A DNA stretch of 59,788 nt, filler included, from Basidiobolus meristosporus CBS 931.73 (lineage: Eukaryota > Fungi > Basidiobolomycota), in assembly GCA_002104905.1 (NCBI GenBank). It is 4 parts of 4 records of this genome, joined end to end, with 100 filler letters (N's around TTAATTAATTAA, not from the genome) between each part and the next. Parts side by side here need not be neighbours in the genome. Positions count along the whole stretch, not along the records: positions 31,064 to 51,268 come from MCFE01001009.1; 3 more parts are not named here. The stretch is one strand, 5' to 3'. Positions 31,064 to 51,268 of this stretch are shown one piece after another. Below the pieces are notes generated by a model. It searched no databases. It had not been told where the DNA came from and saw nothing but the letters and a program-made list of their open reading frames with translations. Within the stretch, counting starts at the first letter, position 1. Each line of letters opens with the position of its first letter. Made by a program: the position numbers and the translations under genes.

Positions 31064-31243
31064 TTCTAGTGAAAATACACAACCATCGAGCCTCTCATCG
31101 CATGAAACATTGGGCCCGGTCCATTGGTTTGTAAAAGGTTTCGGGAAATTTCCAAAATTTTCCATTCGAGATCTTGGTAGTTATACTACCATACGATAGC
31201 ATAACATTTGTGTGGTTTGTTATGTACTTGGTATCAAAACTCT

Positions 31244-31480: not shown

Positions 31481-31788
31481 TTTATAGTGCGACTGAAGTA
31501 TGTAATACAGTAGTATACTTCATCTGTATTACGAGTTTGAAATCGAGTCATAAGTTCTGGTGCCCTCGCTCTGCAATGTCTATAGTAGGTTCACGCTTTG
31601 TTTCCTTGTAGTGCTCCTGTTATACCAACTTAGTAGGACCTAAACTTTCTGTTGTGACTAAACACTGGCACACTAGTTGGCCTGATCTTGTTGCTGGTAG
31701 AGATTTCCAACATTTAAGAAAATATATGGAGATATTCACTCGAATGTCGTTTATTGTGTACTTGGTATCAAGAGGGTATCCAAAATCT

Positions 31789-32172
31789 CTAATAGTCGTC
31801 ATAACCATCACCACGACCACGACCACCACCACCATGCTTCCTCCTTCCATCGTAGTCATCATCGTAGTCGTTGCCGTCGTATCTCTTTCTCCCGTGGCCG
31901 CGGCCATCGTAGTCATCATCGTAGTCGTCACCATCATGTCTCCTTCCTCGGCCACGGCCATTGCCATCGTAATCATCATCGTAGTCGCCACCTCCGCCAC
32001 CACCATATCTCCTTCTTCCGTGACCATGGCTGTCGTAGTCATCGTCGTAGTCACCGCCACCACCGTGACCTACTCCCTTGTAGCCAGGATCGTAAGAGCG
32101 CTCAAGGACTGTGGCGTTGATAGCCAACGCAGCGGAGATGACAAGGAGAAGCTTTGCAACAGAGTATTTCAT
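31789..32172 (-). CDS. DY/G-rich secreted repeat protein copy 2, 127 aa
   Basis: MKYSVAKLLLVISAALA signal; DYDDDYD / GHGRRR repeats; TATA upstream, AATAAA downstream. Confidence 0.9.
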   Translation of the reverse strand: MKYSVAKLLLVISAALAINATVLERSYDPGYKGVGHGGGGDYDDDYDSHGHGRRRYGGGGGGDYDDDYDGNGRGRGRRHDGDDYDDDYDGRGHGRKRYDGNDYDDDYDGRRKHGGGGRGRGDGYDDY

Positions 32173-32619
32173 CTTGAGATAGTGAGTTGGAGGAGTGGAC
32201 GGCTGGTGGTATTTATAAGAAGAAACCATGCGTGAGTATTAGCACGCTCTATAGGTTTATCAGTGTTGTGGGTTTGTATACGCACATTCAAATGCAGAGT
32301 GCATACACTGCAAGCTAGCCATGGCTTACGACAGGATCTACCTTCACTCTGCAGCGTCAGTTTGTAGATCTTCAGGTGTAGGTGTGTCCCGTGCGCCGCG
32401 TAGTACTTGCAGCATCAATATGTGCCAGCTACGAATCAATCACTATTTTGGTCAGATCTTGTTGTTTGCCCATTTCAGCAATAAGAAGGCAAGCAGTGGT
32501 TTCAGAAATTTAAGCTCACATGGCTGCTTAATGCCTGTAAGTATTTACAACTCTGGATGTGTAATGGCGTAGCATAGTTTATTGTGTATCTGGTATCAAA
32601 AAGAATGTATCTCAAGTCT

Positions 32620-32988
32620 CTAGTAGTCGTCATAGCCATCACCACGGCCACCACCACCACCATGCCTCTTTCTCCCATCGTAGTCATCATCGTAATCATT
32701 GCCATGCTTCTTTCTTCTTCCGTGACCGTGACCATCGTAGTCATCGTCGTAGTCATCGCCATCATATCTCCTTCCTCTTCCACGGCCATTGCCATCATAG
32801 TCGTCATCGTAGTCATCGTCATACTTCTTTCTTCTTCCATGGCCATTACCATCGTAATCATCGTCGTAGTCACCGCCACCATGACCTACCCCCTTGTAGT
32901 CAGGGTCGTAGGAGCGCTCAAGGACTGTAGCGTTGATAGCCAACGCAGCGGAGACGACAAGGAGAAGCTTTGCAATGGAGTATTTCAT
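32620..32988 (-). CDS. DY/G-rich secreted repeat protein copy 3, 122 aa
   Basis: Same family signal peptide and repeats. Confidence 0.9.
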   Translation of the reverse strand: MKYSIAKLLLVVSAALAINATVLERSYDPDYKGVGHGGGDYDDDYDGNGHGRRKKYDDDYDDDYDGNGRGRGRRYDGDDYDDDYDGHGHGRRKKHGNDYDDDYDGRKRHGGGGGRGDGYDDY

Positions 32989-33443
32989 GCTGAGATAGTG
33001 ATTTGAAGGAGGGACCGATCGGATTTATATACAGGGTGGTGAGAGTAAACACAAGCAGTAGCACGCTTCACTGGTGTTGTGGATTTGTATTGCACAATAA
33101 ATCTTTGGGATCGAATCATGACATGTGGTAGTCACCTCCCACAGTCTGCAGTGTTAAGGCATCGAATATTATGATCCTCTATTTAATTCAGGCACCACGT
33201 GTTACTTATAGTCACAGCGGGATGCTCTAAATGACTACAACTGATTAATATTAGCTAAGTACACCATTGGCAAATTACCAGAATTTCCTGAACTTCGTAT
33301 AGTCTATTGTGGTTCTTATGCCAGCATGAAGCTAATATCATTCAAGGAATCTTGCAACTTTGTTAATTGGGGACAATCGCTGTTTATTAGATATTTGGTA
33401 TCAAGAGGGCATCTAGAGGGTATCAAGAGGGTATCTAGAATCT

Positions 33444-33803
33444 CTAGTAGTCATCATAGCCATCACCACGGCCACCACTACCACCACCATACTTCTTTCT
33501 TCCATCATATTCATCATCGTAATCGTTGCCATGCTTCTTTCTTCTTCCGTGACCGTGGCCATCGTAGTCATCACCATCGTATCTCCTTCCTCTTCCACGG
33601 CCATTGCCATCATAGTCGTCATCGTAGTCATCGTCATACTTCTTTCTTCTTCCATGGCCATTGCCGTCGTAATCATCGTCATAGTCACCGCCACCATGAC
33701 CTACCCCCTTGTATTCAGGGTCGTAGGAGCGCTCAAGGACTGTAGCATTGATAGCCAATGCAGCGGAGATGACAAGGAGAAGCTTTGCAATGGAGTATTT
33801 CAT
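33444..33803 (-). CDS. DY/G-rich secreted repeat protein copy 4, 119 aa
   Basis: Same family; DPEY variant. Confidence 0.9.
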   Translation of the reverse strand: MKYSIAKLLLVISAALAINATVLERSYDPEYKGVGHGGGDYDDDYDGNGHGRRKKYDDDYDDDYDGNGRGRGRRYDGDDYDGHGHGRRKKHGNDYDDEYDGRKKYGGGSGGRGDGYDDY

Positions 33804-34267
33804 GCTGAGATAGTGATTTGAAGGAGGGGCTGATCAGATTTATATACAGGGTGGTGAGAGTAAGCATAAGCAGTAGCACAAGCAGTAGCATGCTTCATCA
33901 GTGTTGTGGGATTTGTGTTGAGCCTTGCAATCGCTTCAAGCTGCAATGTCAAGACATCAGATATGGGGATTGCCATTTGCTCTATGCACCACCTGTTACT
34001 TACAGCGTCAGTATGGCGTCAACTTCGGCGAGATATCAGCTTATTGCAGTATGTTCTAACAGGTTACAATTTGATCTGTTTCCTTTGTCAGATAAGCACA
34101 CCATTAGCAAACTACCAAAAATTTCCTGAACATCGTATTTCAGTATTCAATACTGAAGTTGTCATAATTTTACATCAAATATCAATTGTAGGTAATCGCA
34201 CAACTTTGAAAATCAGGTGCGATGGCTGTTTATTAGGTTTTTGGTATCAAGATGGTATCTCAAGTCC

Positions 34268-34558
34268 CTAATAATCGGCATAACCACCACCGCGGCCATG
34301 CTGCCTTCTTCCGTCATAGTCAACATCGTAATCATTGCCATGCTTCTTTCTTCTTCCGTGACCGTGACCGTGGCCATCGTAGTCATCGTCATACTTCTTT
34401 CTTCTTCCATGACCATTGCCGTCGTAGTCATCGTCATAGTCACCACCACCATGACCCATCCCCTTGTAGTCAGGATCGTAAGAGCGCTCAAGGACTGTAG
34501 CACTGATAGTCAGCGCCGTGGAGATGACAAGGAGAAGCTTTGCGATGGAATATTTCAT
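34268..34558 (-). CDS. DY/G-rich secreted repeat protein copy 5, 96 aa
   Basis: MKYSIAKLLLVISTALT; ends GGGYADY. Confidence 0.85.
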   Translation of the reverse strand: MKYSIAKLLLVISTALTISATVLERSYDPDYKGMGHGGGDYDDDYDGNGHGRRKKYDDDYDGHGHGHGRRKKHGNDYDVDYDGRRQHGRGGGYADY

Positions 34559-34939
34559 GTTGGAAGCGTGGCAGGAAACCATATCTTTTTGTAGGGTTAT
34601 GGGAGTATATACATGCAGTAGTGCGCTGTACAGTTTCATCAGTACTGTAGCCTGGTATCGAGACATGATACCGATGTCTTTACTCCGCAATTTAACTCAC
34701 AACTTTGTTTACTTGAGATGCTCCTGTTATATCAACTCTTCTGTTGCGGGTCCTAACCAATCACGGGCATACTAGTTGGCCTGATCTTGTTGCTGGTAGA
34801 GATTTCCAACATATAAGCCCTGGCGAGGTATTTTATGTAAATGAGGCATTTTATGCAATTTGGGGCCAGAAAATATATGGAAATATTCACTCGAATGTCG
34901 TTTATTGTGTACTTGGTATCAAGAGGGTATCCAAAATCT

Positions 34940-35320
34940 CTAATAGTCGTCATAACCATCACCACGACCACGACCACCACCACCATGCTTCCTCCTTCCA
35001 TCGTAGTCATCATCGTAGTCGTTACCGTCATATCTCTTTCTTCCGTGGCCGCGGCCATCGTAGTCATCGTCGTAGTCGTCACCATCATGTCTCCTTCCAC
35101 GGCCACGGCCATTGCCATCGTAATCATCATCGTAGTCGCCACCTCCACCACCGCCATATCTCCTTCCGTGACCATGGCCGTCGTAGTCATCGTCGTAGTC
35201 ACCGCCACCACCGTGACCTACTCCCTTGTAGCCAGGATCGTAAGAGCGCTCAAGGACTGTGGCGTTGATAGCCAACGCAGCGGAGATGACAAGGAGAAGC
35301 TTTGCAACAGAGTATTTCAT
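34940..35320 (-). CDS. DY/G-rich secreted repeat protein copy 6, 126 aa
   Basis: Near-duplicate of copy 2. Confidence 0.9.
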   Translation of the reverse strand: MKYSVAKLLLVISAALAINATVLERSYDPGYKGVGHGGGGDYDDDYDGHGHGRRYGGGGGGDYDDDYDGNGRGRGRRHDGDDYDDDYDGRGHGRKRYDGNDYDDDYDGRRKHGGGGRGRGDGYDDY

Positions 35321-35767
35321 TTTGAGATGGTGAGTTGGAGGAGTGGACGGCTGGTGGTATTTATAAGAAGAAATCATGCGTGAGTATTAGCACGCTCTAT
35401 AGGTTTATCAGTGTTGTGGGTTTGTATACGCACATTCAAATGCAGAGTGCATACACTGCAAGCTAGCCATGGCTTACGACAGGATCTACCTTCACTCTGC
35501 AGCGTCAGTTTGTAGATCTTCAGGTGTAGGTGTGTCCCGTGCGCCGCGTAGTACTTGCAGTATCAATATGTGCCAGCTACGAATCAATCACTATTTTGGT
35601 CAGATCTTGTTGTTTGCCCATTTCAGCAATAAGAAGGCAAGCAGTGGTTTCAGAAATTTAAGCTCACATGGCTGCTTAATGCCTGTAAGTATTTACAACT
35701 CTGGATGTGTAATGGCGTAGCATAGTTTATTGTGTATCTGGTATCAAAAAGAATGTATCTCAAGTCT

Positions 35768-36136
35768 CTAGTAGTCATCATAGCCATCACCACGGCCACC
35801 ACCACCACCATGCCTCTTTCTCCCATCGTAGTCATCATCGTAATCATTGCCATGCTTCTTTCTTCTTCCGTGACCGTGGCCATCGTAGTCATCGTCGTAG
35901 TCATCGCCATCATATCTCCTTCCTCTTCCACGGCCATTGCCATCATAGTCGTCATCGTAGTCATCGTCATACTTCTTTCTTCTTCCATGACCATTACCAT
36001 CGTAGTCATCGTCATAGTCACCGCTACCATGACCTACCCCCTTGTATTCAGGGTCGTAGGAGCGCTCAAGGACTGTAGCATTGATAGCCAATGCAGCGGA
36101 GATGACAAGGAGAAGCTTTGCAATGGAGTATTTCAT
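35768..36136 (-). CDS. DY/G-rich secreted repeat protein copy 7, 122 aa (copy 3/4 chimera)
   Basis: 3' part and downstream spacer as copy 3; 5' part (DPEY) and promoter as copy 4. Confidence 0.9.
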   Translation of the reverse strand: MKYSIAKLLLVISAALAINATVLERSYDPEYKGVGHGSGDYDDDYDGNGHGRRKKYDDDYDDDYDGNGRGRGRRYDGDDYDDDYDGHGHGRRKKHGNDYDDDYDGRKRHGGGGGRGDGYDDY

Positions 36137-36573
36137 GCTGAGATAGTGATTTGAAGGAGGGGCTGATCAGATTTATATACAGGGTGGTGAGAGTAAGCAC
36201 AAGCAGTAGCATGCTTCATCAGTGTTGTGGATTTGTGTTGAGCCTTGCAATCGCTTCAAGCTGCAGTGTTAAGGCATGGGGATTGTCGGTTTGATACATG
36301 TGCCACGTGTTAATTTTGGCCACAGTGGGGTGTCAACTTGTCACAATATGCTCTACCAGGCCACAATTTGGTCTGTTTTCTTTGCTAGATAACCGCACTA
36401 ACAGCAAATTACCAGATATTTCCTGAACTTCGTGTTTCAGCATTCGGTACTTGACCTCTTGTGGGTTCTTATGTTGGCATGAAGCTGATGTTATCAGAGG
36501 AATCTTACAACCTTGTAAATGGGGAAAATTACACTTTATTAGTTATTTGATATCAAAAGGGTATCTGGAATCA

Positions 36574-36777
36574 TTAATAGTCGTCATAGTCGCCACCCCC
36601 ACCTCCGCCATATCTCCTTGTTCCGTGATCATGGGCGTCGTATTCATCGTCGTAATCACCACCGCCGCCATGGCCTACTCCCTTGTAGTCAGGATCGTAG
36701 GAGCACTCAAGAACTGTAGTATTGATAGCCAACGCTGCGGAGATGACAAGAAGGAGCTTTGCTACAGAGTATTTCAT
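36574..36777 (-). CDS. DY/G-rich secreted repeat protein copy 8, short 67 aa
   Basis: Family signal peptide; only one to two repeats; LERS changed to LECS. Confidence 0.8.
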   Translation of the reverse strand: MKYSVAKLLLVISAALAINTTVLECSYDPDYKGVGHGGGGDYDDEYDAHDHGTRRYGGGGGGDYDDY

Positions 36778-37088
36778 CTGGAGATAGTAAGTTAGAGTGA
36801 CAAACCTAGTGCATATATAGGGTGATGAGAGTGAGTATATGTGATATCATGCTCTACAGTTTATGTAAGATCTAACAGGCTACAATATGGCTCTAATCAT
36901 TTGTTAATCAAGCACACCATTAGCAAATTACCAAAATTCCTGAACTTTGGTATTCAAAATATAACCTGTGGTGGTTTCTTATGCTGATAGTATTGGTGTG
37001 TAATTTTATCACTTAGTAAACTGGGGATAATCAGTGCTTGTTGTGTATTTGGTGTCAGGAGGATATCATGAAGGTATCAAGAGAGTAT

Positions 37089-37421
37089 CTAGAATTTCTG
37101 GTAGTCGTCATAACCATCACCACGGCCGCTACCACCATACTTCTTTCTTCCATCGTAGTCGTTGCCATGCTTCTTTCTTCCGTGACCGTGACCATCGTAG
37201 TCATCGCCATCGTATCGCCTTCTTCCACGGCCATTGCCATCGTAGTCATCACCATACTTCTTTCTTCTTCCATGGCCATTGCTGTCATAATCATTGTCGT
37301 AGTCACCACCACCATGACCCATCCCCTTGTAGTCAGGATCGTAAGAGCGCTCAAGGACAATAGCATTGATAGTCAGTGCCGTGGAGATGACAAGGAGAAG
37401 CTTTGCGATGGAATATTTCAT
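37089..37421 (-). CDS. DY/G-rich secreted repeat protein copy 9, 110 aa
   Basis: Shares promoter with copy 5; stop lost, giving a YDDYQKF end. Confidence 0.85.
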   Translation of the reverse strand: MKYSIAKLLLVISTALTINAIVLERSYDPDYKGMGHGGGDYDNDYDSNGHGRRKKYGDDYDGNGRGRRRYDGDDYDGHGHGRKKHGNDYDGRKKYGGSGRGDGYDDYQKF

Positions 37422-37802
37422 GTTGGAAGCGTGGCAGGAAACCATATCTTTTTGTAGGGTGATGGGAGTATATACATGCAGTAGTGCGCTGTACAGTTTC
37501 ATCAGTACTGTAGCTTGGTATCGAGACATGATACCGATGTCTTTACTCCGCAATTTAACTCACAACTTTGTTTACTTGAGATGCTCCTGTTATATCAACT
37601 CTTCTGTTGCGAGTCCTAACCAATCACGGGCATACTAGTTGGCCTGATCTTGTTGCTGGTAGAGATTTCCAACATATAAGCCCTGGCGAGGTATTTTATG
37701 TAAATGAGGCATTTTATGCAATTTGGGGCCAGAAAATATATGGAAATATTCACTCGAATGTCGTTTATTGTGTACTTGGTATCAAGAGGGTATCCAAAAT
37801 CT

Positions 37803-38174
37803 CTAATAGTCGTCATAGCCATCACCACGACCACGACCACCACCACCATGCTTCCTCCTTCCATCGTAGTCATCATCGTAGTCATCGCCGTCGTATCTCT
37901 TTCTTCCGTGGCCGCGGCCATCGTAGTCATCATCGTAGTCGTCACCATCATGTCTCCTTCCTCTTCCACGGCCATTGCCATCGTAGTCGTCATCGTAGTC
38001 ATCGTCATACTTCTTTCTTCTTCCATGGCCATTACCGTCGTAGTCATCGTCGTAGTCACCACCACCATGACCTACCCCCTTGTAGTCAGGATCATAAGAG
38101 CGCTCAAGGACTGTTGCGTTGATAGCCAACGCAGCGGAGATGACAAGGAGAAGCTTTGCAATGGAGTATTTCAT
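37803..38174 (-). CDS. DY/G-rich secreted repeat protein copy 10, 123 aa (copy 2/3-type chimera)
   Basis: 3' end and spacer as copies 2/6; 5' end as copy 3. Confidence 0.9.
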   Translation of the reverse strand: MKYSIAKLLLVISAALAINATVLERSYDPDYKGVGHGGGDYDDDYDGNGHGRRKKYDDDYDDDYDGNGRGRGRRHDGDDYDDDYDGRGHGRKRYDGDDYDDDYDGRRKHGGGGRGRGDGYDDY

Positions 38175-38697
38175 GCTGAGATAGTGATTTGAAGGAGAGA
38201 CCGATCAGGTTTATATATAGGGTGGTGAGAGTAAGCATATGTAGCAGCATGCATATAGCTTTCGACGCGTTCGCCTTGCATTCATACGATAAGACTTGGA
38301 TTAAATGCTAAGCTGGGTAAATCAATATGATGCAGGCTTGTTTGTAGGTTCATCATCTTGTTAGCTTTCCCACAATTCGATATTTTGGGCGCGATGGTTG
38401 CTTATTGAGTGCTTGTGGGCTCTAATGATCGACATATCTATCACACCGACCCTTGATCGTTGAAAAGGCACAGTGTCTGAAGTGTGAAGTAAGTTTGCTT
38501 GTGGATGTCAAGCAATGGATATAATATCAGCCTTCTGGTCTCATAAATCCCGTAACTAAGCACTGTATTAAGCGGGCTATTTTTTCAAGGTTCAAGTAGC
38601 TGCAGCCTATCATATCTATAAATATATACACCCGTCAACGTATTGTAAGTAAACATCGTTTATTGTGTACTTGGTAACAAGAGGGTATCTAGAATTT

Positions 38698-39054
38698 CTA
38701 ATAGTCGTCATAACCATCACCACGGCCACCACCATACTTCTTTCTTCCATGTCCATTGCCATCATAGTCATACTTCTTTCTTCTCCCGTGACCGTGACCA
38801 TCGTAATCATCCTCGTAGTCATCTCCATCGTATCTCCTTCTTCCACGACCATTACCGTCATAATCGTCATCGTAGTCGTTGCCATACTTCTTTCTTCTTC
38901 CATGACCATTGCCGTCATAATCATCGTCATAGTCACCGCCACCACCATGACCTACCCCCTTGTAGTCAGGATCGTAAGAGCGCTCAAGGACTGAAGCATT
39001 GATGGCCAACGCAGCGGAGATGACAAGGAGAAGCTTTGCAATGGAGTATTTCAT
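38698..39054 (-). CDS. DY/G-rich secreted repeat protein copy 11, 118 aa
   Basis: Family signal and repeats. Confidence 0.9.
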   Translation of the reverse strand: MKYSIAKLLLVISAALAINASVLERSYDPDYKGVGHGGGGDYDDDYDGNGHGRRKKYGNDYDDDYDGNGRGRRRYDGDDYEDDYDGHGHGRRKKYDYDGNGHGRKKYGGGRGDGYDDY

Positions 39055-39360
39055 CTTGAGATGGTGATTTGAAGGAGCGAACGACTGGATGCATTTATAG
39101 GATAATGAGAGTAGACGCATGCAGTAGCACACTTTATCAGTGTTGTTGATTTGTATCGGTGGACTGCATAGCGCTAACATTGATGTGTGATCTCATCTTA
39201 TGAGGGAGTTGATTTATGCCAAAACTTGCGTTCAACATGTGCTCGGATTTGATTGATATGTCAACTATGGTTACCACTATTTCCATGTTTAATGGCTCAA
39301 TCACGTAGAATCGATCAAAGGAGATAGTGTTGTGCCCTGAGCTGAACTTTGGAGAGTGAA

Positions 39361-39433
39361 GGGGCGTTGGCCTAATGGATAAGGCATCAGACTTCGGATC
39401 TGGGGATTGTGGGTTCGAGTCCCATGCGCCTCG
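39361..39433 (+). tRNA. tRNA-Arg(UCG) copy 1
   Basis: 73-nt cloverleaf: acceptor GGGGCGT/GCGCCTC, D-arm GCCT/AGGC, anticodon loop CT-TCG-GA, T-arm GTGGG-TTCGAGT-CCCAT; T4 run after. Confidence 0.96.
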
Positions 39434-39670
39434 TTTTAGTATTGCAGCACTTCGATCCAGATTGGGTCAATCGCACTTTTTCTAACACTTCACCATGTTC
39501 GCCATTTCGGTGATTATCGGATGATTTGGATCAACTTCCAACATTTAAGCTGCCATTTTATGCTTTGCTAACGTCGCGTTGATAACCTTATAAATGGATA
39601 CACCTTACAACATACCATGTGTAAATATCAGTTTATTGAGTATCTGGTATCAAAAAGGTATCTCAAGTCT

Positions 39671-40036
39671 CTAGTAGTCTTCATAGCCATCACCACGACC
39701 ACGACCACCATGCCTCTTTCTCCCATCGTAGTCATCATCGTAATCATTGCCATGCTTCTTTCTTCTTCCATGACCGTGGCCATCGTAATCGTCGTCGTAG
39801 TCATCACCATCATATCTCCTTCTTCTTCCACCGCCATTGCCATCGTAGTCGTCGTCATAGTCATCACCATATTTCTTTCCTCTTCCATGGCCATTGCCGT
39901 CATAATCATCATCGTAGTCACCACCGCCATGACCTACCCCCTTGTAGTCAGGGTCGTAGGAACGCTCAAGGACTGTAGCATTGATAGCCAACGCAGCAGA
40001 GATGACAAGGAGAAGCTTTGCAACGGAGTATTTCAT
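39671..40036 (-). CDS. DY/G-rich secreted repeat protein copy 12, 121 aa
   Basis: Family signal and repeats. Confidence 0.9.
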   Translation of the reverse strand: MKYSVAKLLLVISAALAINATVLERSYDPDYKGVGHGGGDYDDDYDGNGHGRGKKYGDDYDDDYDGNGGGRRRRYDGDDYDDDYDGHGHGRRKKHGNDYDDDYDGRKRHGGRGRGDGYEDY

Positions 40037-40364
40037 CTTGAGATAGTGATTTGAAGGAGTGGCTGACCGAATGTATTTATAGGATAATGAGGGTAGACGC
40101 ATGCAATAGCACACATTATCAGTTTTGTCGATTTGTATCGGTGAGCTGCACGGCACTAACATTGATGTGGGATCCCTTCTTATGAAGGAGTTGATTTATG
40201 CCAATACTTGCGTTTAACATGTGTTCGGATTCGAAGGATACGTCGAATAGGGTTACTACTATATCTCCAGATTTTGGTCCAACACGGTATTGGATTTTAA
40301 GTAGGCTCATAGAATTGCTAAAGAAGGGTAGTCTTCTACCCTGAGCTGTACTTTGAAGAGTGAG

Positions 40365-40437
40365 GGGGCGTTGGCCTAATGGATAAGGCATCAGACTTCG
40401 GATCTGGGGATTGTGGGTTCGAGTCCCATGCGCCTCG
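40365..40437 (+). tRNA. tRNA-Arg(UCG) copy 2
   Basis: Identical to copy 1. Confidence 0.96.
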
Positions 40438-41087
40438 TATTTTGTGCTTCATCGTCAGATGTCTCGAACTAGAGCCATAATAGCATTTAGCTCTGCAAAT
40501 ATTTTCACAGTTTAGACATTTAGCAATTGCAACAAAATTATAGACATCACATACTGCTACTCTGTGCTCGTAGCAGGATGAGGCCAGAGGAACCCACCAC
40601 TGGTTTTGGGCAATTTAATTGCAATCTCACCAGTAAATCCATTTTTCCGTTGTCGTTAACATACTTCTTCCTTTCCAGATTGTTCGAAGAGTAATAAAAT
40701 CCTCGAAATGCCCTAGCCCATGCCGATGTGTCCGTACAAAGTAGAACCGGAGGATTTCTATACAGCACATCGGTGTTATGATTCGCATTTGATAGAGTAG
40801 CATAGTGTTTTGATGTCTGCAGTTGTATTATATATGAAACTAGCAGTAATCATCATCAGTGTCCTTGAAATGCTCGTGCTCATGTCCTTTCATTTACTTC
40901 GTATTAGCGTGACTATTAAAAACAAGTGAATTACCTAGTGAACAAGAAAAAATATAGCAGAGCACCTGCATTTGTAGGAAATATAATATATTCTCTGTTT
41001 AGGAAGTAATAATTCTTTGTGAAAGTACTGTTTATTAAGTTGTATAACGAGGTTAAGTCTTTGGTATTCAGAGGGTATCTTAAGTCT

Positions 41088-41468
41088 CTAATAGTCGTCG
41101 TAGTCATCACCATGGCCACGGCCACCACTATACTTCCTTCTTCCATGGCCATTGCCATCGCCATCATAGTCATTATCGTAATCATTGCCATACTTCTTTC
41201 TTTTTCCGTGACCGTGGCCATCGTAGTCATCTCCATCATATCTCCTTCTTCCACGGCCATTACCATCGTAATCATCGTCGTAGTTGCCACCTCCACCGCC
41301 GCCATATCTCCTTCCGTGACCATTGCCGTCATAATCATCGTCATAGTCACCGCCACCACCATGACCTACCCCCTTGTAGTCAGGATCGTAAGAGCGCTCA
41401 AGGACTGAAGCATTGATGGCCAACGCAGCAGAGATGACAAGGAGAAGCTTTGCAATGGAGTATTTCAT
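41088..41468 (-). CDS. DY/G-rich secreted repeat protein copy 13, 126 aa
   Basis: Family signal and repeats; promoter shared with copy 11. Confidence 0.9.
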   Translation of the reverse strand: MKYSIAKLLLVISAALAINASVLERSYDPDYKGVGHGGGGDYDDDYDGNGHGRRYGGGGGGNYDDDYDGNGRGRRRYDGDDYDGHGHGKRKKYGNDYDNDYDGDGNGHGRRKYSGGRGHGDDYDDY

Positions 41469-41774
41469 CTTGGGATGGTGATTTGAAGGCGTGAACGACT
41501 GGATGCATTTATAGGATAATGAGAGTAGACGCATGTAGTAGCACACTTTATCAGTGTTGTTGATTTGTATCGGTGGACTGCATAGCGCTAACAGTGATGT
41601 GTCATCTCATCTTATGAAGGAGTTGATTTATGCCAAAACTTGCGTTCAACATGTGCTCGGATTTGATTGATATGTCAACTATGGTTACCACTATTTCCAT
41701 GTTTAATGGCTCAATCACGTAGAATCGATCAAAGGAGATAGTGTTGTGCCCTGAGCTGAACTTTGGAGAGTGAA

Positions 41775-41847
41775 GGGGCGTTGGCCTAATGGATAAGGCA
41801 TCAGACTTCGGATCTGGGGATTGTGGGTTCGAGTCCCATGCGCCTCG
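41775..41847 (+). tRNA. tRNA-Arg(UCG) copy 3
   Basis: Identical to copy 1, flanks also nearly identical. Confidence 0.96.
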
Positions 41848-42084
41848 TTTTAGTATTGCAGCACTTCGATCCAGATTGGGTCAATCGCACTTTTTCTAAC
41901 ACTTCACCATGTTCGCCATTTCGGTGATTATCGGATGATTTGGATCAACTTCCAACATTTAAGCTGCCATTTTATGCTCTGCTAACGTTGCGTTGATAAC
42001 CTTATAAATGGATACACCTTACAACATACCATGTGTAAATATCAGTTTATTGAGTATCTGGTATCAAAAAGGTATCTCAAGTCT

Positions 42085-42465
42085 CTAATAATCGTCATAA
42101 CCATCACCTCGGCCGCCGCCACCACGACCACCATACTTCTTTCTTCCATTACCATCGTAGTCATCATCGTAATCATTGTCATACTTCTTTCTCTTTCCGT
42201 GACCGTGGCCATCGTAGTCATCGTCGTAGTCATTGCCGTCATATCTCCTTCCTCTTCCGCGACCATTGCCATCGTAGTCGTCGTCATAGTCATCGCCGTA
42301 CTTCTTTCTTCTTCCGTGACCGTGGCCATCATAGTCATCATCATAGTCACCGCCACCATGACCTACCCCCTTGTAGTCAGGATCGTAAGAGCGCTCAAGA
42401 ACTGTAGCATTGATAGCTAGCGCAGCGGAGATGACAAGGAGAAGCTTTGCAATGGAGTATTTCAT
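42085..42465 (-). CDS. DY/G-rich secreted repeat protein copy 14, 126 aa
   Basis: Family signal and repeats. Confidence 0.9.
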   Translation of the reverse strand: MKYSIAKLLLVISAALAINATVLERSYDPDYKGVGHGGGDYDDDYDGHGHGRRKKYGDDYDDDYDGNGRGRGRRYDGNDYDDDYDGHGHGKRKKYDNDYDDDYDGNGRKKYGGRGGGGRGDGYDDY

Positions 42466-42787
42466 GCTGAGATAGTGATTTGAAGGAGGGCCGATCAGAT
42501 TTATATACAGGGTGGTGAGAGTAAGCATAAGCAGTAGCACAAGCAGTAGCATGCTTCATCAGTGTTGGCGATTTGTATTGATGATTTAAGCTGCACAGCA
42601 CTAACATTGATGTATGCTCCCATCTTGTGATAGAATCAACTTGTGTCAACATTTGCGTTCAACATGTGTTCGGATGTGATTGATATGCCAACTATGGCTA
42701 CCGCTGTTTCCATGCTTAATGGCTCAGCCATATAGAATTGATAAAAAGAGAAAGTAGTTTACCCTGAGCTGGAAATTTGAGAGTGAA

Positions 42788-42860
42788 GGGGCGTTGGCCT
42801 AATGGATAAGGCATCAGACTTCGGATCTGGGGATTGTGGGTTCGAGTCCCATGCGCCTCG
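42788..42860 (+). tRNA. tRNA-Arg(UCG) copy 4
   Basis: Identical to copy 1; T5 run after. Confidence 0.96.
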
Positions 42861-43093
42861 TTTTTGTAATTTAACACCATAATCGAAATGGAGTCAGTAA
42901 CACTGTTTGAATTATTCGCCAAGGTCACCATTTCGAAGTAAATCAAATGATTTGGATATTTCAATTTCCAACTTGAAAGTTTTAGCGTTACATTTTGATA
43001 CCCTTGTAGATAGTCACAATTCTGAACATGTCATGTGTAAATGTTGGTTTATTGTGTATTTGGTATTTGGTACCAAGAAGGTATCTCAAGTCT

Positions 43094-43480
43094 CTAATAA
43101 TCGTCATAACCATCACCTCGGCCGCCGCCGCCACCGCCGTACTTCTTTCTTCCATGACCATTACCATCATAATCGTCGTCATAATCATTGTCATACTTCT
43201 TTCTTCTTCCGTGACCATGACCATCGTAGTCATCGTCGTAGTCATCCCCGTCATATCTCCTTCTTCTTCCACGGCCATTACCATCATAATCATCATCGTA
43301 GTCGTTACCATACTTCTTTCTTCCTCCATGGCCATTACCGTCATAATCATCGTCATAGTCACCACCACCACCGTGACCTACCCCCTTGTAGTCAGGATCG
43401 TAAGAGCGCTCAAGGACTGAAGCATTGATAGCCAACGCAGCGGAGATGACAAGGAGAAGCTTTGCAACGGAGTATTTCAT
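43094..43480 (-). CDS. DY/G-rich secreted repeat protein copy 15, 128 aa
   Basis: Family signal and repeats. Confidence 0.9.
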   Translation of the reverse strand: MKYSVAKLLLVISAALAINASVLERSYDPDYKGVGHGGGGDYDDDYDGNGHGGRKKYGNDYDDDYDGNGRGRRRRYDGDDYDDDYDGHGHGRRKKYDNDYDDDYDGNGHGRKKYGGGGGGRGDGYDDY

Positions 43481-44474
43481 GTTGATATAATGGTTGGAAA
43501 TAATCAGAAGATCAAGGCATTTATACATATTACAATGCAAGAATATGCAGAAGCACGCCCATCAGTGTTTGCTGATCACACGTACAGTGTTGAGGAGAGA
43601 TGTCCGTAGCATTCATGGCTTTAATCTAGTGCGCATTTAGCAGTTTTATAATGCGATATGTGTTGTTGGTTAAGCACACTCAGTACCAAACTACCTGTGC
43701 TGACAACTCAGCTTGTAAGCTGTACATCAATTAGATGCTTCCCAACTTGTGCTATACTTGCAGTCATGGCTCTTTCTGCAGGTGACTTGAGTTTGATATG
43801 TCCAGATGCATATTATGTTTTGAAATCAGATTTTCTTGAGTGCCAATGACACGCCTGTGGTAATGCTGTACCTAGGTTTTCTGGCCAACGAGAAGCAGTA
43901 GTCAATCATATAGTATTGTGGCATATTTCTAAATGGAATTCTGAGTCAGTTTACTTCAGGCCATTACACTGTGCAATATTCCTAGTAATGGCCAGACATT
44001 TCTTTGTAGCATATTAACCAGCAATAGTAGTAGCAGTAGTAGTCAAAATCATCGTTGGTGAAGCGTTTCAGCAGATTGAAATAATAGGAAGCAAAGTATA
44101 ACGTGCTTTATGTTTGCTTGCATAGACTCACGGTGAAATGCCACTCTCAATTTGCGAGATAAATATATTCAAGCACCTGAATACGGGGTAACCCAAGGAG
44201 GAGGATTTTAGTGGCGAAATTTGTCAGGTATTTAGTTCGGATATATTCGGATATATTGTATTAGGTAACCACTCCAAATAGATAATCCACAATTTCCTTT
44301 TATGACCCACTGTTCTTCGCGGAGGTTACTAATGGGGGAATGTTTTATTGATATGACAAACGTTCTCTAGTTGGAATGACAAGAAATATTTTATATGTTC
44401 TAGATGTATGGCAAGCATTTCTATTTAACTAGGCCTGTTAGCATTTTCTATCACTGGAAACGAATCTAAGCAAA

Positions 44475-46406
44475 ATGAGACATGTAATTATTGGAGGTGT
44501 AGCCGGAGGAGCAACAGCAGCCGCCCGATTGAGAAGAGTGGATGAGACGGCTGAGATCATTTTATTGGAGAAGGGTCCCTATATCTCTTACGCCAACTGT
44601 GGTTTGCCGTACTATATCGGCGGAGTCATTGCCAAACGCGAAAAACTGCTGCTGCAGACGCCAAAGTCGTTTGGTACGCGTTTCCGTATTGACGTCAGAA
44701 TAGAGAGCGAAGTAATTGCCATCCATCCAGAGGATAAAAGCCTGACCATTCGTAGGGCAAATGGAGAAGAATACAAAGAAACTTACGACAAGCTGCTACT
44801 ATCACCAGGTGCCAATCCCGTGAAGCCGCCATTGGAGGGTATCAATTCCGAAGGCATCTTCACCCTGCGCAACGTAGAAGATACCGACCATATCAAAGCG
44901 TACATTGCTGAGAAACAGGTAAAGCGTGCCGTAGTAGTAGGTGCCGGTTTTATCGGGCTGGAGATGGCGGAGAACCTGCACCATGCCGGGGTGGCTGTTT
45001 CCGTAGTCGAAATGGGCAACCAGGTTATGGCTCCTATCGACTTCTCTATGGCAGCGTATATCCATCAACACTTGACACAAAAGGGCACATCTTTATATCT
45101 TGAAGAAGGTGTTACCCACTTCCAGCGTACAGACAGCGGCATTACTGTTTTCCTGAAAAGTGGCAGGACCATTCCTGCCGATATGGTATTACTCTCTATC
45201 GGCGTGCGTCCAGCAACAGCATTGGCGCAACAGGCCGGCTTGAAGTTGGGAGAGACGGGTGGCATCTGGGTAGATAAACACTTGGAAACCTCCCAAAAGG
45301 ATATCTATGCAGTGGGTGATGCTATTGAATATCCTCATCCGTTGACCGGGAAACCGTGGCTCAACTATCTTGCCAATCCGGCTAATCGCCAAGGTCGTAT
45401 CGTAGCCGATAACATGGTATTTGGCAACACGGTTTCTTATGAAGGGGCTATCGGTACTTCTATCGCCAAAGTATTCGATATGACTGTGGCTTCTACAGGA
45501 CTGGCAGCCAAGCGTTTGAAGCAGTTGGGAATGGAGTATCAGAGTTCAGTTACCCACTCCTCTTCCCATGCAGGCTATTATCCGGACGCTTTGCCCTTGA
45601 CGCTGAAGCTAACCTTTCACCCTAAGACTGGTAAGCTTTACGGTGCGCAATGTGTGGGCTACGAAGGAGTGGACAAGCGTATCGACCAAATAGCTGGAGT
45701 CATCAAACATGGCGGGACGGTATATGACCTGACGGAAACTGAGCACACCTATGCACCCCCTTTCTCATCTGCCAAAGATCCTATAGCCATTGGTGGATAT
45801 GTTGCCTCCAATATAATCAGCGGGGCTATGCCGGCTATTTCCTGGCGCGAACTCGTTGATGAGAAAGACCAAGTGATGATGTTTGATACCCGTACTGCCG
45901 AAGAATACTCATTTGGCTCCATTCCGGGGGCTGTCAATGTTCCCTTGAATGAATTGCGTGAGCACATTGCTGAAATCCCGATGGATAGACCAGTTGTTCT
46001 ATTCTGTGCCATAGGACTGCGCGGCTATCTAGCTCAGCGCATCTTGATGGGACGCGGTTATCGCAATGTTCGCAACCTAATCGGCGGCTATAAAACTTAT
46101 TCCACCAGCGTAGCTCCTATTGCAAAGCCTTCTACCGAGGTTCCTTCACCACAAGAGGCTGGTGAGGCGACAAAGATAAACGTATGCGGGTTACAGTGTC
46201 CCGGGCCTATCATGCAGGTAACAGAAGCGATGAACAGCATTGCGGTTGGCAAACGTGTTACAGTCACGGCAACTGATGCAGGTTTGGCTCGTGACGCCTC
46301 TGCCTGGTGCGACACTACAGGCAACAAATTGATATCAAAGCATGAAGAAAAAGGTCGCTACACAGTTGTTCTAGAAAAAGGAGAACCCGCCACTAAACAG
46401 AATTGA
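44475..46406 (+). CDS. cdr: Bacterial-type CoA-disulfide/persulfide reductase - rhodanese - TusA/SirA fusion, 643 aa
   Basis: GGVAGG FAD motif, SYANCGLPY redox Cys, GAGFIGLE NAD motif, YAVGDA, YAPPFS, rhodanese CAIGLRG, TusA CGLQCPGP; intronless. Confidence 0.95.
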   Translation: MRHVIIGGVAGGATAAARLRRVDETAEIILLEKGPYISYANCGLPYYIGGVIAKREKLLLQTPKSFGTRFRIDVRIESEVIAIHPEDKSLTIRRANGEEYKETYDKLLLSPGANPVKPPLEGINSEGIFTLRNVEDTDHIKAYIAEKQVKRAVVVGAGFIGLEMAENLHHAGVAVSVVEMGNQVMAPIDFSMAAYIHQHLTQKGTSLYLEEGVTHFQRTDSGITVFLKSGRTIPADMVLLSIGVRPATALAQQAGLKLGETGGIWVDKHLETSQKDIYAVGDAIEYPHPLTGKPWLNYLANPANRQGRIVADNMVFGNTVSYEGAIGTSIAKVFDMTVASTGLAAKRLKQLGMEYQSSVTHSSSHAGYYPDALPLTLKLTFHPKTGKLYGAQCVGYEGVDKRIDQIAGVIKHGGTVYDLTETEHTYAPPFSSAKDPIAIGGYVASNIISGAMPAISWRELVDEKDQVMMFDTRTAEEYSFGSIPGAVNVPLNELREHIAEIPMDRPVVLFCAIGLRGYLAQRILMGRGYRNVRNLIGGYKTYSTSVAPIAKPSTEVPSPQEAGEATKINVCGLQCPGPIMQVTEAMNSIAVGKRVTVTATDAGLARDASAWCDTTGNKLISKHEEKGRYTVVLEKGEPATKQN

Positions 46407-46957
46407 AGCATTTTGCGTGGCTACAAAAATGCTCCACCTTCCTATAACGTTAGTTTAGTTAGTTTCCCAATTTGGGATTATATAAAGTCATTTGCAATCA
46501 TGCCATTCCATTCCATAAATGTATGAGGCTCTTGTGCTCACTAAATCCAGATCAATTATGCTCCCGATATTCTCAAAATAGTACATAATTGACCAATTCG
46601 TCCCTTGCTTCAAGATCTTGATATGGATTGAAAATGAATATGAATGCTAGCCAAAGAAGGCAATTGAAGGCAATACTTCAACTAATGTAATCCCTAATTG
46701 TTACAAATACTTTACTCGTACACAAATAGAACAGCTAATAGTACTAATTGGTTGGATATTTGTCAGCCATTAGAAAATATCATACGATAAACTGGCTCTT
46801 TTTGTTATGAAAGTCTTGCAGATTGTAAGGCACGTGAAGTAAATGTAGGTTTTTTGATTTTCACATCATGAATATTGCATGTAAAGGGAGTTTTTAAACT
46901 TTAGTAAGCTCTGGCAAGACAACATGTAAAAATATTTATGAAGATCCCACAAATACA

Positions 46958-47051
46958 TGTTGTAAGAGTTTTTGCGTTATTGGAATGATTAGAAGTACAA
47001 GTATATCATGTGGTTCTCACTTAATGACGGATTGAATGTAAAAGTTGTATT
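46958..47051 (-). mobile_element. Partial older LTR interrupted by a younger copia insertion
   Basis: tgttgtaagagtttttg...gaatgtaaaagttgtatt, cut exactly where the next TGTTGCAAG begins. Confidence 0.75.
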
Positions 47052-50000
47052 TGTTGCAAGAGTCTTGGAGATGTTGGAAGTGATTGGCAGAACAAGTAGA
47101 TTATGTGGTTTTCACTTAATGATTCATTGAATGCAAAAGTAGTATTTATACTTTACATGGTCATGGGATAATAAACACATAGAATAGATTTAAGAAGGTC
47201 CCAAGAGCATGTGTGCAAAGTTAGGGGCTGTTTGGATAACTTATCCAATTTTCATGTTCTAGTACCTGATATGTGGGTGAAAATATTCCAAGTAGATCCC
47301 AACAAAAAATTTAGTCATTATTCTCTAAGATTTGTTGGTAATGATCAAAGTGACTAAGTTAGGTGAATATTTAGAAGGAATTCCAAACTTTTACAACACT
47401 CCCACCCAACTAAATGATAATATTGACTAGTCCTAATTTTGACCTAAGATATTCAAGTTTGTCTCTAGCTAATGGTTTGGTAAATAGGTCTGCAATCATT
47501 TCATCTGTAGGACAGTAAACCAAATTAGCTAAGCTAATCTCTATAGCTTCACATATGAAATGAAGTCTAATATCAGTGTGCCTAGTTCTAGCATGAAAAG
47601 TTGGATTTCTAGCTAATTGTATACTTGCTTGATTATCTTGAACTAAAGTAATAGGCATTTTTATTGTAAAAATTTGTAATTCCACCTAAATATTCACCTA
47701 ACTTAGTCACTTAGAGCATTACCTTCAAGTCCTAGGGAATACTGACAAAACTCCTTGTCAGGATATACTTAGAATATTTACCCAGTACATGAAAATTCTC
47801 AAAGTTGTCCAAATAACCCCAAACTTTGAAAACATGCTCTTGGGCCCATCCTTAACCTATTCTGCATGCTTGTAATGCCAAGATCATGTAAAAAGTATAA
47901 ATACTACTTTTACATTCAATAAATCATCAAGTGAAAACCACATAATCCATTTGTCCTCTCAAATCACTTCCAATATCTTCAAGACTCTTGCAACAATTTT
48001 TTGCTAGTAGAGCCAGATGTGCTCTATCTGGCTTATAGTAGATAGCATAGTCAGCAGTACTCCTTTGGACACTCAAGATTCTAAATAAGAATACATCTTG
48101 CTATTCCCAGCTCTTGTTAATTGTTTGAGACCATATAGCAACATTCTAAGCTTGAAGACCAAGTGGGAGTAATCCTGGTCAGCAAAGCCATCAGGCTGGT
48201 CTATATACATGCTATCATCAGTTTTTACATTCAAAAATGCAGTTTCTACATCCATTCAATGTATAAAAACTAATATTTGGCAGCAATAGCTAAAATACAT
48301 CCGATGGAATCAAACTTGGCTACTAGTGCAGAGGTCTCATTATAGTCACATTCTTTTGTTTGAGAGTATCCTTTGGCCATAAGTTTTGCTTTGATCTTAT
48401 AATCTTACCATTAGCCTTGTACTTTTTCCTGAAGACCCATCTTAGTACAATCAAATTTTGATTGATTGGTAATTTGACAGAGTCTCCAGTTTGATGTTCT
48501 ATCAGTGCCTGATAATCCTTGATCATTGCAGATCTCCAAAACTTTTTCTAAGAGCTATTTAAGGCCTATCTTACAGTCTGTGTTGCATCAATATGGTCTG
48601 AATAGGCATAAACTGAGTTTGTACCCTCCTTGGTATAGTAATTTGGTCCATTTCTGGTCCTGTAGAATCTCCTAGTTTGCAATACTGGAATGATCACACC
48701 AAGGGTATTCCTGGGTGCTGATACATGCTGAACCACAGTTGAAGAGTCCTCTGGAGAGAAAAAATCTTCATTCTCTTGCTCTGATTCAATCCTGACTGCT
48801 GGTGGACTTGAAATCAGATTTTTGTTATCACTCAGTGTATATTTTTGGGAATTCTTAATTTTTCATCAAAGAACACATCCCTGGCATTAATCAGCTTCTT
48901 TGCTTTGGCAGTGTAGAGTCTGTATGATTTACTCTCATTGCAGCAGCCTAAAAATAAGCATTTTGCACTTTTTGGCTCAGATTTGGACTGATTACCAGGC
49001 AGTTCCTTGGCAAATACTTAACACCCAAACATTCTTAGATATTCTGCACTTTGTCAGTGATCATACCATGTCTCAGGTGGAGTAGAATCATGTGGTGTTC
49101 TGCTATAGCTCCTACTTTTAAGAAATGCAGCTGTAGCAACTAATCTAACTTAATATTATAGGATGATTTTGATCATGGACCATATATCCTGCTATATCCA
49201 TTTTCTTGCATGATTTGCACCTTCTGCTACCCCATTTTGCTGTGAAGAGTATGGTACAGTAGTCTCTTGCTTTATCCCATGAATTTTGCAGAAGTGGATG
49301 AAGAGCTTTGAGGATTGTTTTCCACCATTGTCAGAGCATATTTTCTTAATTTTTTCACCAATGTCTCTCTCCACCAAGGCTGTAAGCTCCTTGAGCTTAG
49401 AGAGAGCTTCTTTCTTTCTCTCCACAAAGTAGACCCATGTGTATCTTGAATAATCATCAATGAAAGTGATTTAATAATACATCCTGCCTAAAGAAAAATA
49501 TTGCATAGGTCTACACAGATCTGAGTGAGTTAAATCTAATTTCTTCTTAGTTTTGATTTACCCAGAGCTCCTGAAAAGTTGTATGGCTTGTTCCCCAGAT
49601 ATGCAGGCTTCACAATGCTCCAAACCAGCTGTGGGATCAATTTTACCTTGGAAATTAGCTGATCTTTGATCAATTTGTGCAAATATTCAAAATGTTGTGC
49701 ATCAACATTTAAAACTTGGCCAATTTCACTCCATTAGAAAGTCTAGTACCCTAACAGATTTTCCCTAATCCAAACATAACTAATCACTGTTATGGTCTAT
49801 TTTAACTCTTCTCAGAATCTATTTTTAGCTGTCATACCTGATCAATTTTCAAGTGGTCATTACGTCCTCAATTGATCTGCTAAGCCTTTCCAAAGGATTA
49901 GTCATCTGAGAACTATCCAATCACTTAAAGTTGCCAAGACATCAGCTGATTGATGATGCAATTTTCATTTATCTTATGCACCTATCAACACCCCAACAGA

Positions 50001-50520
50001 TTTCAATTAGTCCAGTCTCTTGGTGCCTACTAATTTAACTTGATCTGAAAAATATAAATAAAGATTACTGAACCTTTTGGTTTAGTGTGTGTCTCAACAA
50101 AATTAAGAATTTAACAATTCCGTTCTAGTTTCCACCCAAGCCTAGCATATCTAGCATTCCCAAGAACACCAAGCCTAGCCTGTAGAGCAAACCAATTCTG
50201 TTGCCTTTATAGCCCAACTCAACTATATACAAGACCAATATTAGACCAGAACCTCTCTGCTAATATTTCTGTCACCCTTTACAACTCTAAGATTCTGTGC
50301 TTAGTTGTCACTTAGGTTCAGTTAAGTCATTCAAGAGTTTTATTACGTTTTCTCTTGGATACAACACAAGATTGCTTTGTTCAAATTGCCTGTGCCAAAA
50401 CATTGATGTTTCCTCACTTAAGTAGCTCATAACTGATTTCTGAAAGGATGGAGCATAGTCAACTTGTATAGATTCTGATCTATGATACCCAAAGCAATAG
50501 GGGCACCATTTTGATTAGTC
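47052..50520 (-). mobile_element. Degraded copia element (3' LTR 47052-47398, PPT, deleted RT, integrase, pre-integrase) with internal insertions
   Basis: Collinear with 9817-12620 and 19300-19620; many stops; ~750 bp of RT missing; foreign sequence at ~49710-50380. Confidence 0.88.
47662..47995 (+). mobile_element. Solo LTR, opposite orientation, TSD ATTTT
   Basis: ATTTT at 47657-47661 and 47996-48000; reverse complement of the family LTR. Confidence 0.9.
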
Positions 50521-51268
50521 AGGGTTGGGGGGGAGGAAAGTCACCAAGTGGTGGAGTCTTTATTTATTTATGACAAAGTTAATCCCAATTAATTCCTAGA
50601 AAGCAAGGTCTGAGAAATATCTCCCTGGTAAGCCAGGTCTGAGAGTTGAGAAGCTGAGTGGTACTGTATTACCTAGTTATATAGGTCTGAGAGAGGTTTC
50701 CTGGAAACTCAGGCCTGAGAAGTAAGAATCTGAGTATATCTGAGGTAAGTTATACTGGTTTGTGGTAGCTGAATTGTGGCTAGAATGGCCAGTTGAGTGA
50801 GAGAACTGAGGGGAACTTCTGAGCAATCACCAGTCAAATATACCAGGCAAATCTGACCAATTAGGGCCAGGGGGGAAACAGTCACCAACTGGTGAAATCA
50901 TTATTTCAGCTGAAACAAAGAAGACAGCACTATTGTCACAGTCTTAATACAGGAGTGTCTAGCTGAGGGGAACTTGTAGGTAAGTTAACAAGGGTAAATT
51001 ATAGTTCACAGTGCTCAAGACAATGTTCAGTGGGAAGAGGGGTAGCAAGAGGGACAAGAATGATTTTTGAACAACATTGATAAGGGTTAGGCGGGATGAT
51101 AATCACCAAAAGGTGAAATCTTAGGGTCAGGGGAACCCTATAAAAAATAATTTGGGTTAGGGGAAGACAGTCATCAACAGGTGAAATCTTTATCTCAGTT
51201 GAAACAAAGAAGCCAGCACTACTGTTGTAGCTTTGGTACAAGAGTGTGTAGCTGATGGGAATTTGTAG
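50521..51268. repeat. CpG-depleted repeat with internal ~290-bp duplication, related to 9550-9620
   Basis: 50871-50990 and 51161-51268 are imperfect direct repeats; a GGG..AGTCACCAA..GGTGAAATC-like motif occurs about four times. Confidence 0.6.

Follow-up and report, generated by a model that had tools for sequence, protein, structure and literature searches.

In enzymes that fuse a coenzyme A (CoA)-disulfide reductase (CoADR) to a rhodanese domain (RHD), NAD(P)H reduces flavin adenine dinucleotide (FAD), FAD reduces a Cys-CoA center, and the cysteine of the rhodanese domain presents sulfane sulfur. Two-domain enzymes of this kind include the CoADR-RHD of Bacillus anthracis (PDB 3ICR), the Shewanella-type persulfide reductase (3NTA/3NTD), and the CoA-persulfide reductase 8A56. 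Bacteroides carries four-module CoADR-rhodanese-TusA-DsrE proteins (814 to 825 amino acids in Bacteroides sp. GD17, Bacteroides fluxus, and Bacteroides muris), and TusA and DsrE proteins hand sulfur to one another in other systems (PMC4175335). Here we describe a CoADR-rhodanese-TusA gene of the fungus Basidiobolus meristosporus CBS 931.73, at positions 44475 to 46406 of a 59,788-nucleotide stretch of DNA from assembly GCA_002104905.1 (the window, along which positions are counted unless another locus is named). We consider it very probable that the gene stems from an ancestral transfer out of Bacteroides and has been kept under selection, we infer as a sulfur reductase. A sequence-only reading of the window had proposed a recent transfer from a gut anaerobe; the transfer and a Bacteroides-type donor are upheld by phylogeny, integration, an orthologue, and relics of donor DNA, but "recent" is not, as the event predates a split between Basidiobolus species.

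A study of strain CBS 931.73 (Tabima et al. 2020, PMC7466969) describes 806 transfer candidates, with Bacteroidetes among the donor phyla, that have few or no introns, host-like composition, and even coverage. The reductase gene comes from the same strain and is like these candidates in its lack of introns, host-like GC content, fungal neighbors, even coverage, and gut-bacterial donor phylum. The text of that study covers secondary-metabolite genes and does not name the reductase gene; what our analysis adds for this gene are relics of donor synteny, a domain truncation, and a measure of selection between species. A survey of 44 early-diverging fungi makes no mention of this gene, and full-text searching of the literature turned up no relevant account of a transferred CoA-disulfide reductase in fungi.

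Probable Bacteroides ancestry and relics of the donor neighborhood

The open reading frame (ORF) is intact and intronless, as the sequence-only reading had it, and encodes 643 amino acids plus a stop codon. Its ATG is the earliest start codon available in frame, following an in-frame stop, and the AAA-ATG start context that had been described can be seen directly in the sequence. The product is identical to protein P0124 on the 20,205-bp CBS 931.73 contig that contributes this part of the window. The features of the locus are as follows.

43541-44417, strand not assigned: upstream flank, non-bacterial; 96 to 99% collinear with the other B. meristosporus copies, no match to 81 bacterial loci
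44418-44461, plus strand: relic of the donor 5' intergenic region, 44 nucleotides; motif core conserved upstream in Bacteroides, 75% identical to the B. ranarum relic
44475-46406, plus strand: whole coding sequence of the CoADR-rhodanese-TusA protein, bacterial-derived (ORF, Pfam, homologues)
44478-45770, plus strand: flavoprotein disulfide reductase module (Pfam Pyr_redox_2, residues 2 to 285; Pyr_redox_dim, residues 331 to 432)
44598-44600, plus strand: codon of redox Cys42 (SYANC motif)
45852-46103, plus strand: rhodanese domain, residues 460 to 543 (Pfam)
46005-46007, plus strand: codon of rhodanese active-site Cys511 (CAIGLRG motif)
46173-46379, plus strand: TusA domain, residues 567 to 635 (Pfam)
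46197-46199, plus strand: codon of TusA Cys575 (CPGP motif)
46389-46406, plus strand: new C-terminal tail ATKQN and stop codon (bacterial homology ends at ~46391)
46407-47051, strand not assigned: downstream flank, non-bacterial, up to a high-copy repeat; crossed by contigs of sequencing runs X1 and X2 that extend out of the gene

The resemblance to Bacteroides enzymes that had been described proved to be correct, at approximately 85% amino acid identity. The next-best matches after those in Basidiobolus were Bacteroides proteins of 811 to 825 amino acids with 83 to 86% identity, and the four-module proteins named above match at 83 to 86% over residues 1 to 638. Among the best 120 matches, most of which carried no source name, those that did were all from Bacteroides, Basidiobolus aside; the nearest Atlas clusters to the protein were bacterial or archaeal. 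At the DNA level, identity was 79% to Bacteroides sp. GD17 and ~78% to the closest metagenome bin, and synonymous divergence (dS) from the nearest sampled bacterium was ~0.9 to 1.5. Because of this distance, and because the transfer predates the split between B. meristosporus and Basidiobolus ranarum, it cannot have been very recent. One match of 91%, to protein P0002 of metagenome locus L001, was set aside, as it covers only the N-terminal 445 residues and is inflated by a repeat of ~100 residues. This direct repeat of ~300 nucleotides (L001 9809-10416) lies inside the gene, is absent from the sister sequences P0014 and P0036, and is probably an assembly error.

We retrieved 80 named Bacteroidota loci and built two trees from them. 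The quick tree (85 rows) gathered the four Basidiobolus rows into one clade (Shimodaira-Hasegawa-like approximate likelihood ratio support, 99) within a starred Bacteroides clade; rows L001 and L052 of this tree carried the longest ORF, not the gene, and were disregarded. P0014 and P0036 represent the closest metagenome lineage in the other tree, a careful maximum-likelihood tree of 59 rows and 662 shared columns. In the careful tree, Basidiobolus was monophyletic (100/99) on a stem of 0.094 and joined a group including Bacteroides sp. GD17, Bacteroides fluxus, Bacteroides muris, and Bacteroides heparinolyticus at 94/86, and this joint group lay within a larger Bacteroides clade at 88/90. The fungal clade is thus nested in Bacteroides; the sequence-only reading had expected nesting in Bacteroidales. 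Bacteroides sp. GD17 was at least as close to the fungi as the metagenome lineage P0014/P0036. The donor is resolved to a clade of sequences labeled mostly Bacteroides.

The second fungal species, B. ranarum, has an orthologue (KAK9700965; 89% protein and 85% DNA identity) on an 8.3-kb contig (L003) of an independent assembly, GCA_040143965.1. The fungal gene and its four-module Bacteroides parent share domain order, cofactor motifs, all three cysteines, and part of the upstream intergenic DNA. They differ in that the Bacteroides homologues run on into a DsrE/DrsE_2 module of ~170 amino acids, as had been stated, whereas the window ORF ends five residues past EKGEP and is not a four-module protein; the B. 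meristosporus copy also lacks ~10 to 18 residues of the linker, and the fungal gene stands in fungal DNA without sigma-70, peptidase C11, or MarR neighbors. No remnant of DsrE was found in any fungal locus by tblastn at E values up to 10. In both fungi, homology ends in the TusA-DsrE linker, ~15 to 30 nucleotides farther along in B. ranarum, and derived bases just before the breakpoint are common to the two species, as are the replacement A570V at a bacterially invariant site and a change at site 604. This common truncation zone, together with the shared bases and replacements, favors one transfer before the lineages split, and to find the gene, likewise truncated and with the common replacements, in another species and an independent assembly is as expected of a transferred gene. 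The split between these lineages separates the two major clades of Basidiobolus (10.1101/2025.03.31.646025).

The strongest evidence for transfer, not foreseen by the sequence-only reading, comes from relics of the donor neighborhood. The donor gene order, seen in Bacteroides sp. GD17 and the metagenome bin, is sigma-70, a 132-amino-acid gene, peptidase C11, the reductase, and MarR. Upstream of the B. ranarum reductase gene, pieces of this region survive in the donor order: L003 2590-2651 matches residues 187 to 210 of sigma-70 (84.6%; E = 6e-15), L003 2649-2754 matches the last 27 codons of sigma-70 and the following non-coding DNA of GD17 (85 to 86%; E = 1e-28 to 1e-29), and L003 2939-3112 matches the tail (last codons) of the peptidase C11 gene and intergenic DNA (E of ~1e-7). 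The insert therefore spanned at least ~4 kb of donor DNA. In B. meristosporus, the only remnant of the donor's neighboring DNA is the 44-nucleotide intergenic core at 44418-44461, and no relic of sigma-70, peptidase C11, or MarR was found in any locus of this species.

In Bacteroides, a conserved motif with an inverted-repeat core (of the TTTTCCAATGGAAA type) occupies ~1880-1960 of locus L005 and the same place in L006 and L008 to L010. It lies 50 to 100 nucleotides upstream of the reductase gene, and a MarR-family gene lies downstream of the reductase gene. The motif is likely an operator or promoter element that partly survives in both fungi.

Integration and copies in Basidiobolus

The gene is richer in GC and CpG than its flanks, as had been reported, with a GC content of 0.495 and an observed/expected (o/e) CpG ratio of 0.87, versus 0.389 and 0.57 in the upstream flank and 0.332 and 0.33 in the first kilobase downstream; past 47064, the CpG ratio falls to 0.00 to 0.05. 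A mean GC content of 0.4865 has been published for the genes of this strain (PMC7466969). Because the gene matches this host mean, the contrast reflects coding versus repeat DNA and is no mark of foreign origin.

Bacterial DNA homology begins near the ATG and stops at ~46391, five codons before the stop codon, and tblastx of the window flanks against 81 bacterial loci gave no match. Short-read contigs of X1 and X2 bridge the junctions on the 5' side (44045-44610) and on the 3' side (45293-46609 and 45594-46975). The depth comparison called for by the sequence-only reading showed even word depth of ~425 to 520 in gene and flanks. X1 and X2 may derive from the assembly's own sample, so that they test the assembler, not the culture. 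At the paralogous locus L002, a Zn2Cys6 regulator gene (Zn_clus/Fungal_trans) and a major facilitator superfamily transporter gene lie 6 to 10 kb upstream, the regulator being 6 kb from the reductase copy. Fungal neighbors, collinear paralogous flanks, bridging contigs, even depth, and flanks free of bacterial DNA together place the gene physically within fungal DNA.

CBS 931.73 has four loci of the gene, and three of the four ORFs are intact. The window protein clusters at 97 to 99% with ORY02540 (195-kb contig), ORX88953 (67-kb contig), and ORX64446 (13-kb contig); the intact ORFs differ among themselves by 6 to 19 nucleotides and 3 to 6 residues. All four loci are collinear over the gene and both flanks, at 96 to 99% near the gene and ~88% farther out. 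The copy on the 13-kb contig (L004 10001-11932) goes out of frame from about codon 451 and once more from about codon 584, and its deposited 537-amino-acid model skips these frameshifts by means of introns; this copy may be a pseudogene in decay, or the contig, a short one, may contain long-read indels that were not corrected. In runs X1 and X2, a second contig of similar depth over 44475-44610 differs at 13 of 136 positions and no longer matches upstream of the ATG, which points to a further, more diverged gene copy with another 5' flank in the same sample. In two paralogous loci, a Protoglobin-domain gene of 120 amino acids (L002 17762-18124 and L085 17213-17575) follows the reductase gene at 5.3 to 5.8 kb on the downstream side, a distance that in the window falls past the end of the contig.

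Selection, predicted function, and surrounding repeats

Between B. meristosporus and B. ranarum, nonsynonymous divergence (dN) was 0.059 to 0.064 and dS was 0.47 to 0.68, giving dN/dS ratios of 0.086 (NG86) and 0.137 (YN00). These ratios of 0.09 to 0.14 indicate that the gene is under selection and, if there was a single transfer, the whole path over which they were measured lies within fungi. The decay of the co-transferred neighbors is a natural contrast to the kept reductase gene. Among 79 bacterial homologues, 236 columns were invariant or nearly so; each fungus departs from only four of these, which fall in the TusA domain or the tail, so that all those in residues 1 to 545 are kept. TusA is the sole domain with changes at bacterially invariant residues (A570V, K583T, and F604L). 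In run X3 (2013, same study, another sample; 27 million letters of contigs), 44479-46221 was present at ~99.9% with neither flank. The same run also holds the repeat at 47048-47260. Run X4, from another isolate under the same species label, matched the repeat alone at a likeness of at least 90%, which does not imply absence of the gene.

The Pfam match to Pyr_redox_2 (1.5e-61), along with Pyr_redox and Pyr_redox_dim, places the N-terminal module among the class I pyridine nucleotide-disulfide oxidoreductases, and the cofactor motifs are those for FAD (GGVAGG, residues 7 to 12) and NAD(P)H (GAGFIGLE, residues 156 to 163). The key cysteines were all retained, as had been stated: C42 in SYANC, C511 in CAIGLRG, and C575 in CPGP. 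C42, the single redox cysteine of the SxANC motif, was invariant across all fungal and bacterial rows, and the fused C-terminal rhodanese has the conserved C511 loop. The B. anthracis CoADR-RHD structure 3ICR matched residues 3 to 545 (E = 2e-174), and 3NTA and 8A56 also matched; over these two-domain enzymes, the full-length match to residues 3 to 545 had E values of 2e-174 to 1e-152, with the same architecture of a single redox cysteine and a rhodanese cysteine, and sequence assigns the protein to this family unambiguously. Unlike these enzymes, the fungal protein carries TusA as an additional domain and has a eukaryotic host, and its activity is predicted. Its score of 483.7 bits against the CoADR equivalog TIGR03385 fell below the cut-off of 578.8, and that against NF010037 was 365, below 394. 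Because of these scores, the protein was not filed as a plain CoADR; scores below the cut-offs are as expected for this subfamily. We favor, with modest confidence, a predicted NAD(P)H- and FAD-dependent CoA-persulfide or polysulfide reductase. Lacking any N-terminal extension, the protein is by default taken to be cytosolic.

The DNA around the gene is rich in repeats. Downstream, 47064-51268 forms a 4.2-kb repeat-rich flank with only 5 CpG dinucleotides and normal GpC, and the edge of this CpG-poor region falls where a very high-copy repeat sets in (~47052). In B. ranarum, the first 2 kb of L003 show the same CpG depletion (o/e, 0 to 0.04) and a repeat that also occurs beside the B. meristosporus copies. 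These observations suggest CpG loss in repeats, driven by methylation or resembling repeat-induced point mutation, that has spared the transferred gene. The repeat at 47052-47995 consists of nested inverted repeats (47084-47396 versus 47664-47962) around an ORF on the minus strand (47410-47685) resembling the C terminus of a copia-type Pol; its word depth in X1 and X2, up to 1e5 to 1e6, marks it as a member of a very abundant family of repeats. Upstream, 31064-43540 is an array of diverged units with small minus-strand ORFs that have signal-peptide-like starts and carry 57-nucleotide tandem repeats rich in D, Y, G, H, and K; the last four units hold one tRNA-Arg(TCG) gene each (39361, 40365, 41775, and 42788). 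A Pfam scan found no match for the copia-like ORF or for the small array ORFs. Upstream of the other reductase copies, the same array ORFs have been annotated as genes. A stretch of L003 (316-1189) is 67 to 72% identical, in opposite orientation, to 49125-49615. It lies upstream of the gene in B. ranarum and downstream in every B. meristosporus copy, and represents either a repeat family common to both species or what is left of an orthologous locus after rearrangement.

Probable history of the transfer and its meaning

Under an ancestral transfer, at least ~4 kb of Bacteroides DNA would have entered the nuclear genome of the ancestor of B. meristosporus and B. ranarum, running from inside the sigma-70 gene via the small hypothetical gene and the peptidase C11 gene into the reductase gene. 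The 3' end of the insert would have fallen in the TusA-DsrE linker, so that the DsrE module was lost. The neighboring genes would then have decayed or been deleted, while purifying selection kept the CoADR-rhodanese-TusA frame of 643 to 667 amino acids, and duplication in B. meristosporus would have produced the four collinear loci, three of them intact. In the predicted enzyme, electrons would pass from NAD(P)H via FAD to Cys42, working with bound CoA, and rhodanese Cys511 and TusA Cys575 would carry the sulfane sulfur that is reduced to H2S. Such a reductase may help a gut-dwelling fungus to cope with sulfide and reactive sulfur species.

An assembly chimera or bacterial contamination, in which the gene would be no part of the fungal genome, is effectively refuted. 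The lack of introns, the 85% identity to gut Bacteroides, the bacterial-type start, and the possibility that X1 and X2 come from the assembly's own sample would all suit it, but the gene exists in four collinear copies on separate contigs with fungal genes adjoining, its orthologue lies in the independent B. ranarum assembly, and its DNA is only ~79% identical to that of any sampled bacterium. Moreover, depth is even, contigs bridge the junctions, the flanks are without bacterial sequence, the donor's neighbor genes have decayed, and DsrE is gone from every fungal copy but present in full-length homologues from 79 bacterial loci. We regard as improbable two independent transfers into B. meristosporus and B. 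ranarum from related, unsampled Bacteroides donors. Flanks that cannot be aligned between the species, the differing extent of the donor relics, and a sigma-70 relic (~15%) that seems younger than half the between-species dS would be explained in this way; against it stand the monophyly of the fungal clade (100/99) on its 0.094 stem, truncation points within ~15 to 30 nucleotides in the same linker, the common derived bases before the breakpoint, the common A570V with site 604 changed in both species, and intergenic relic bases common to both.

Two further alternatives accept an ancestral transfer and concern what became of the gene. It is very improbable that the gene is a silent passenger, functionless in the fungus and not yet decayed: although no run with the gene is recorded as RNA and one of the four copies (L004) is frameshifted, dS of ~0.5 to 0.7 versus dN of ~0.06 and intact ORFs in both species argue for constraint, the co-transferred neighbors have decayed to fragments, which is the expected fate of unselected DNA, and the shifts of frame in L004 may stem from long-read indels that were not corrected. 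A retained gene with another role, as a glutathione- or protein-persulfide reductase, an NADH oxidase, or a TusA sulfur donor for tRNA thiolation or molybdenum cofactor, is unlikely but deserves serious weight. The loss of DsrE, the confinement of changed invariant sites to TusA, the variation of sites 583 and 584 among paralogues, the TIGR03385 score, and the glutathione-based metabolism of fungi are consistent with such a role, whereas the CoADR-rhodanese core (residues 1 to 545) retains every bacterially invariant residue, and the protein is similar over its full length to solved CoADR-RHD, Npsr, and CoA-persulfide reductase proteins.

Several observations weigh against a single old transfer of a CoA-persulfide reductase that is now in use. 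The nodes that nest the fungal clade in Bacteroides are only moderately supported (86 to 94), and no alignment joins the flanks of one species to those of the other, which means that the two need not share an insertion site. The sigma-70 relic looks neutral, yet is only ~15% diverged from the Bacteroides consensus, versus 0.24 to 0.34 for half the between-species dS; with ~170 sites only, this is a loose fit to one old transfer at equal rates. None of the listed runs that hold the gene is recorded as RNA, and X3 is suggestive of a transcriptome, its library kind being a guess. Glutathione is the main thiol of fungi, so the substrate used in the cell may be something other than CoA persulfide; the activity of the fungal protein, like that of its four-module Bacteroides parent, is a predicted one.

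Bacterial genes already make up ~5% of the gene set of this fungus, and one more transfer is unsurprising. The case is unusually well resolved, with a donor clade, relics of gene order in one species, a domain-removing breakpoint mapped to within ~30 nucleotides, and selection that can be measured on a path wholly within fungi, all of which makes it a clean model of a eukaryote domesticating a bacterial gene. Should the enzyme prove active, the transfer would have brought the bacterial trait of CoA-based persulfide reduction into a eukaryote in a sulfide-rich gut. As a tentative reading, which we hold to be possible rather than probable, this may be the first CoA-persulfide/polysulfide reductase at work in a eukaryote, its DsrE entry module lost, its TusA retuned, and its copies amplified for survival in the sulfide-rich gut. 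If that is true, the relics in B. ranarum would record how a multi-gene bacterial insert was whittled down to one useful gene.

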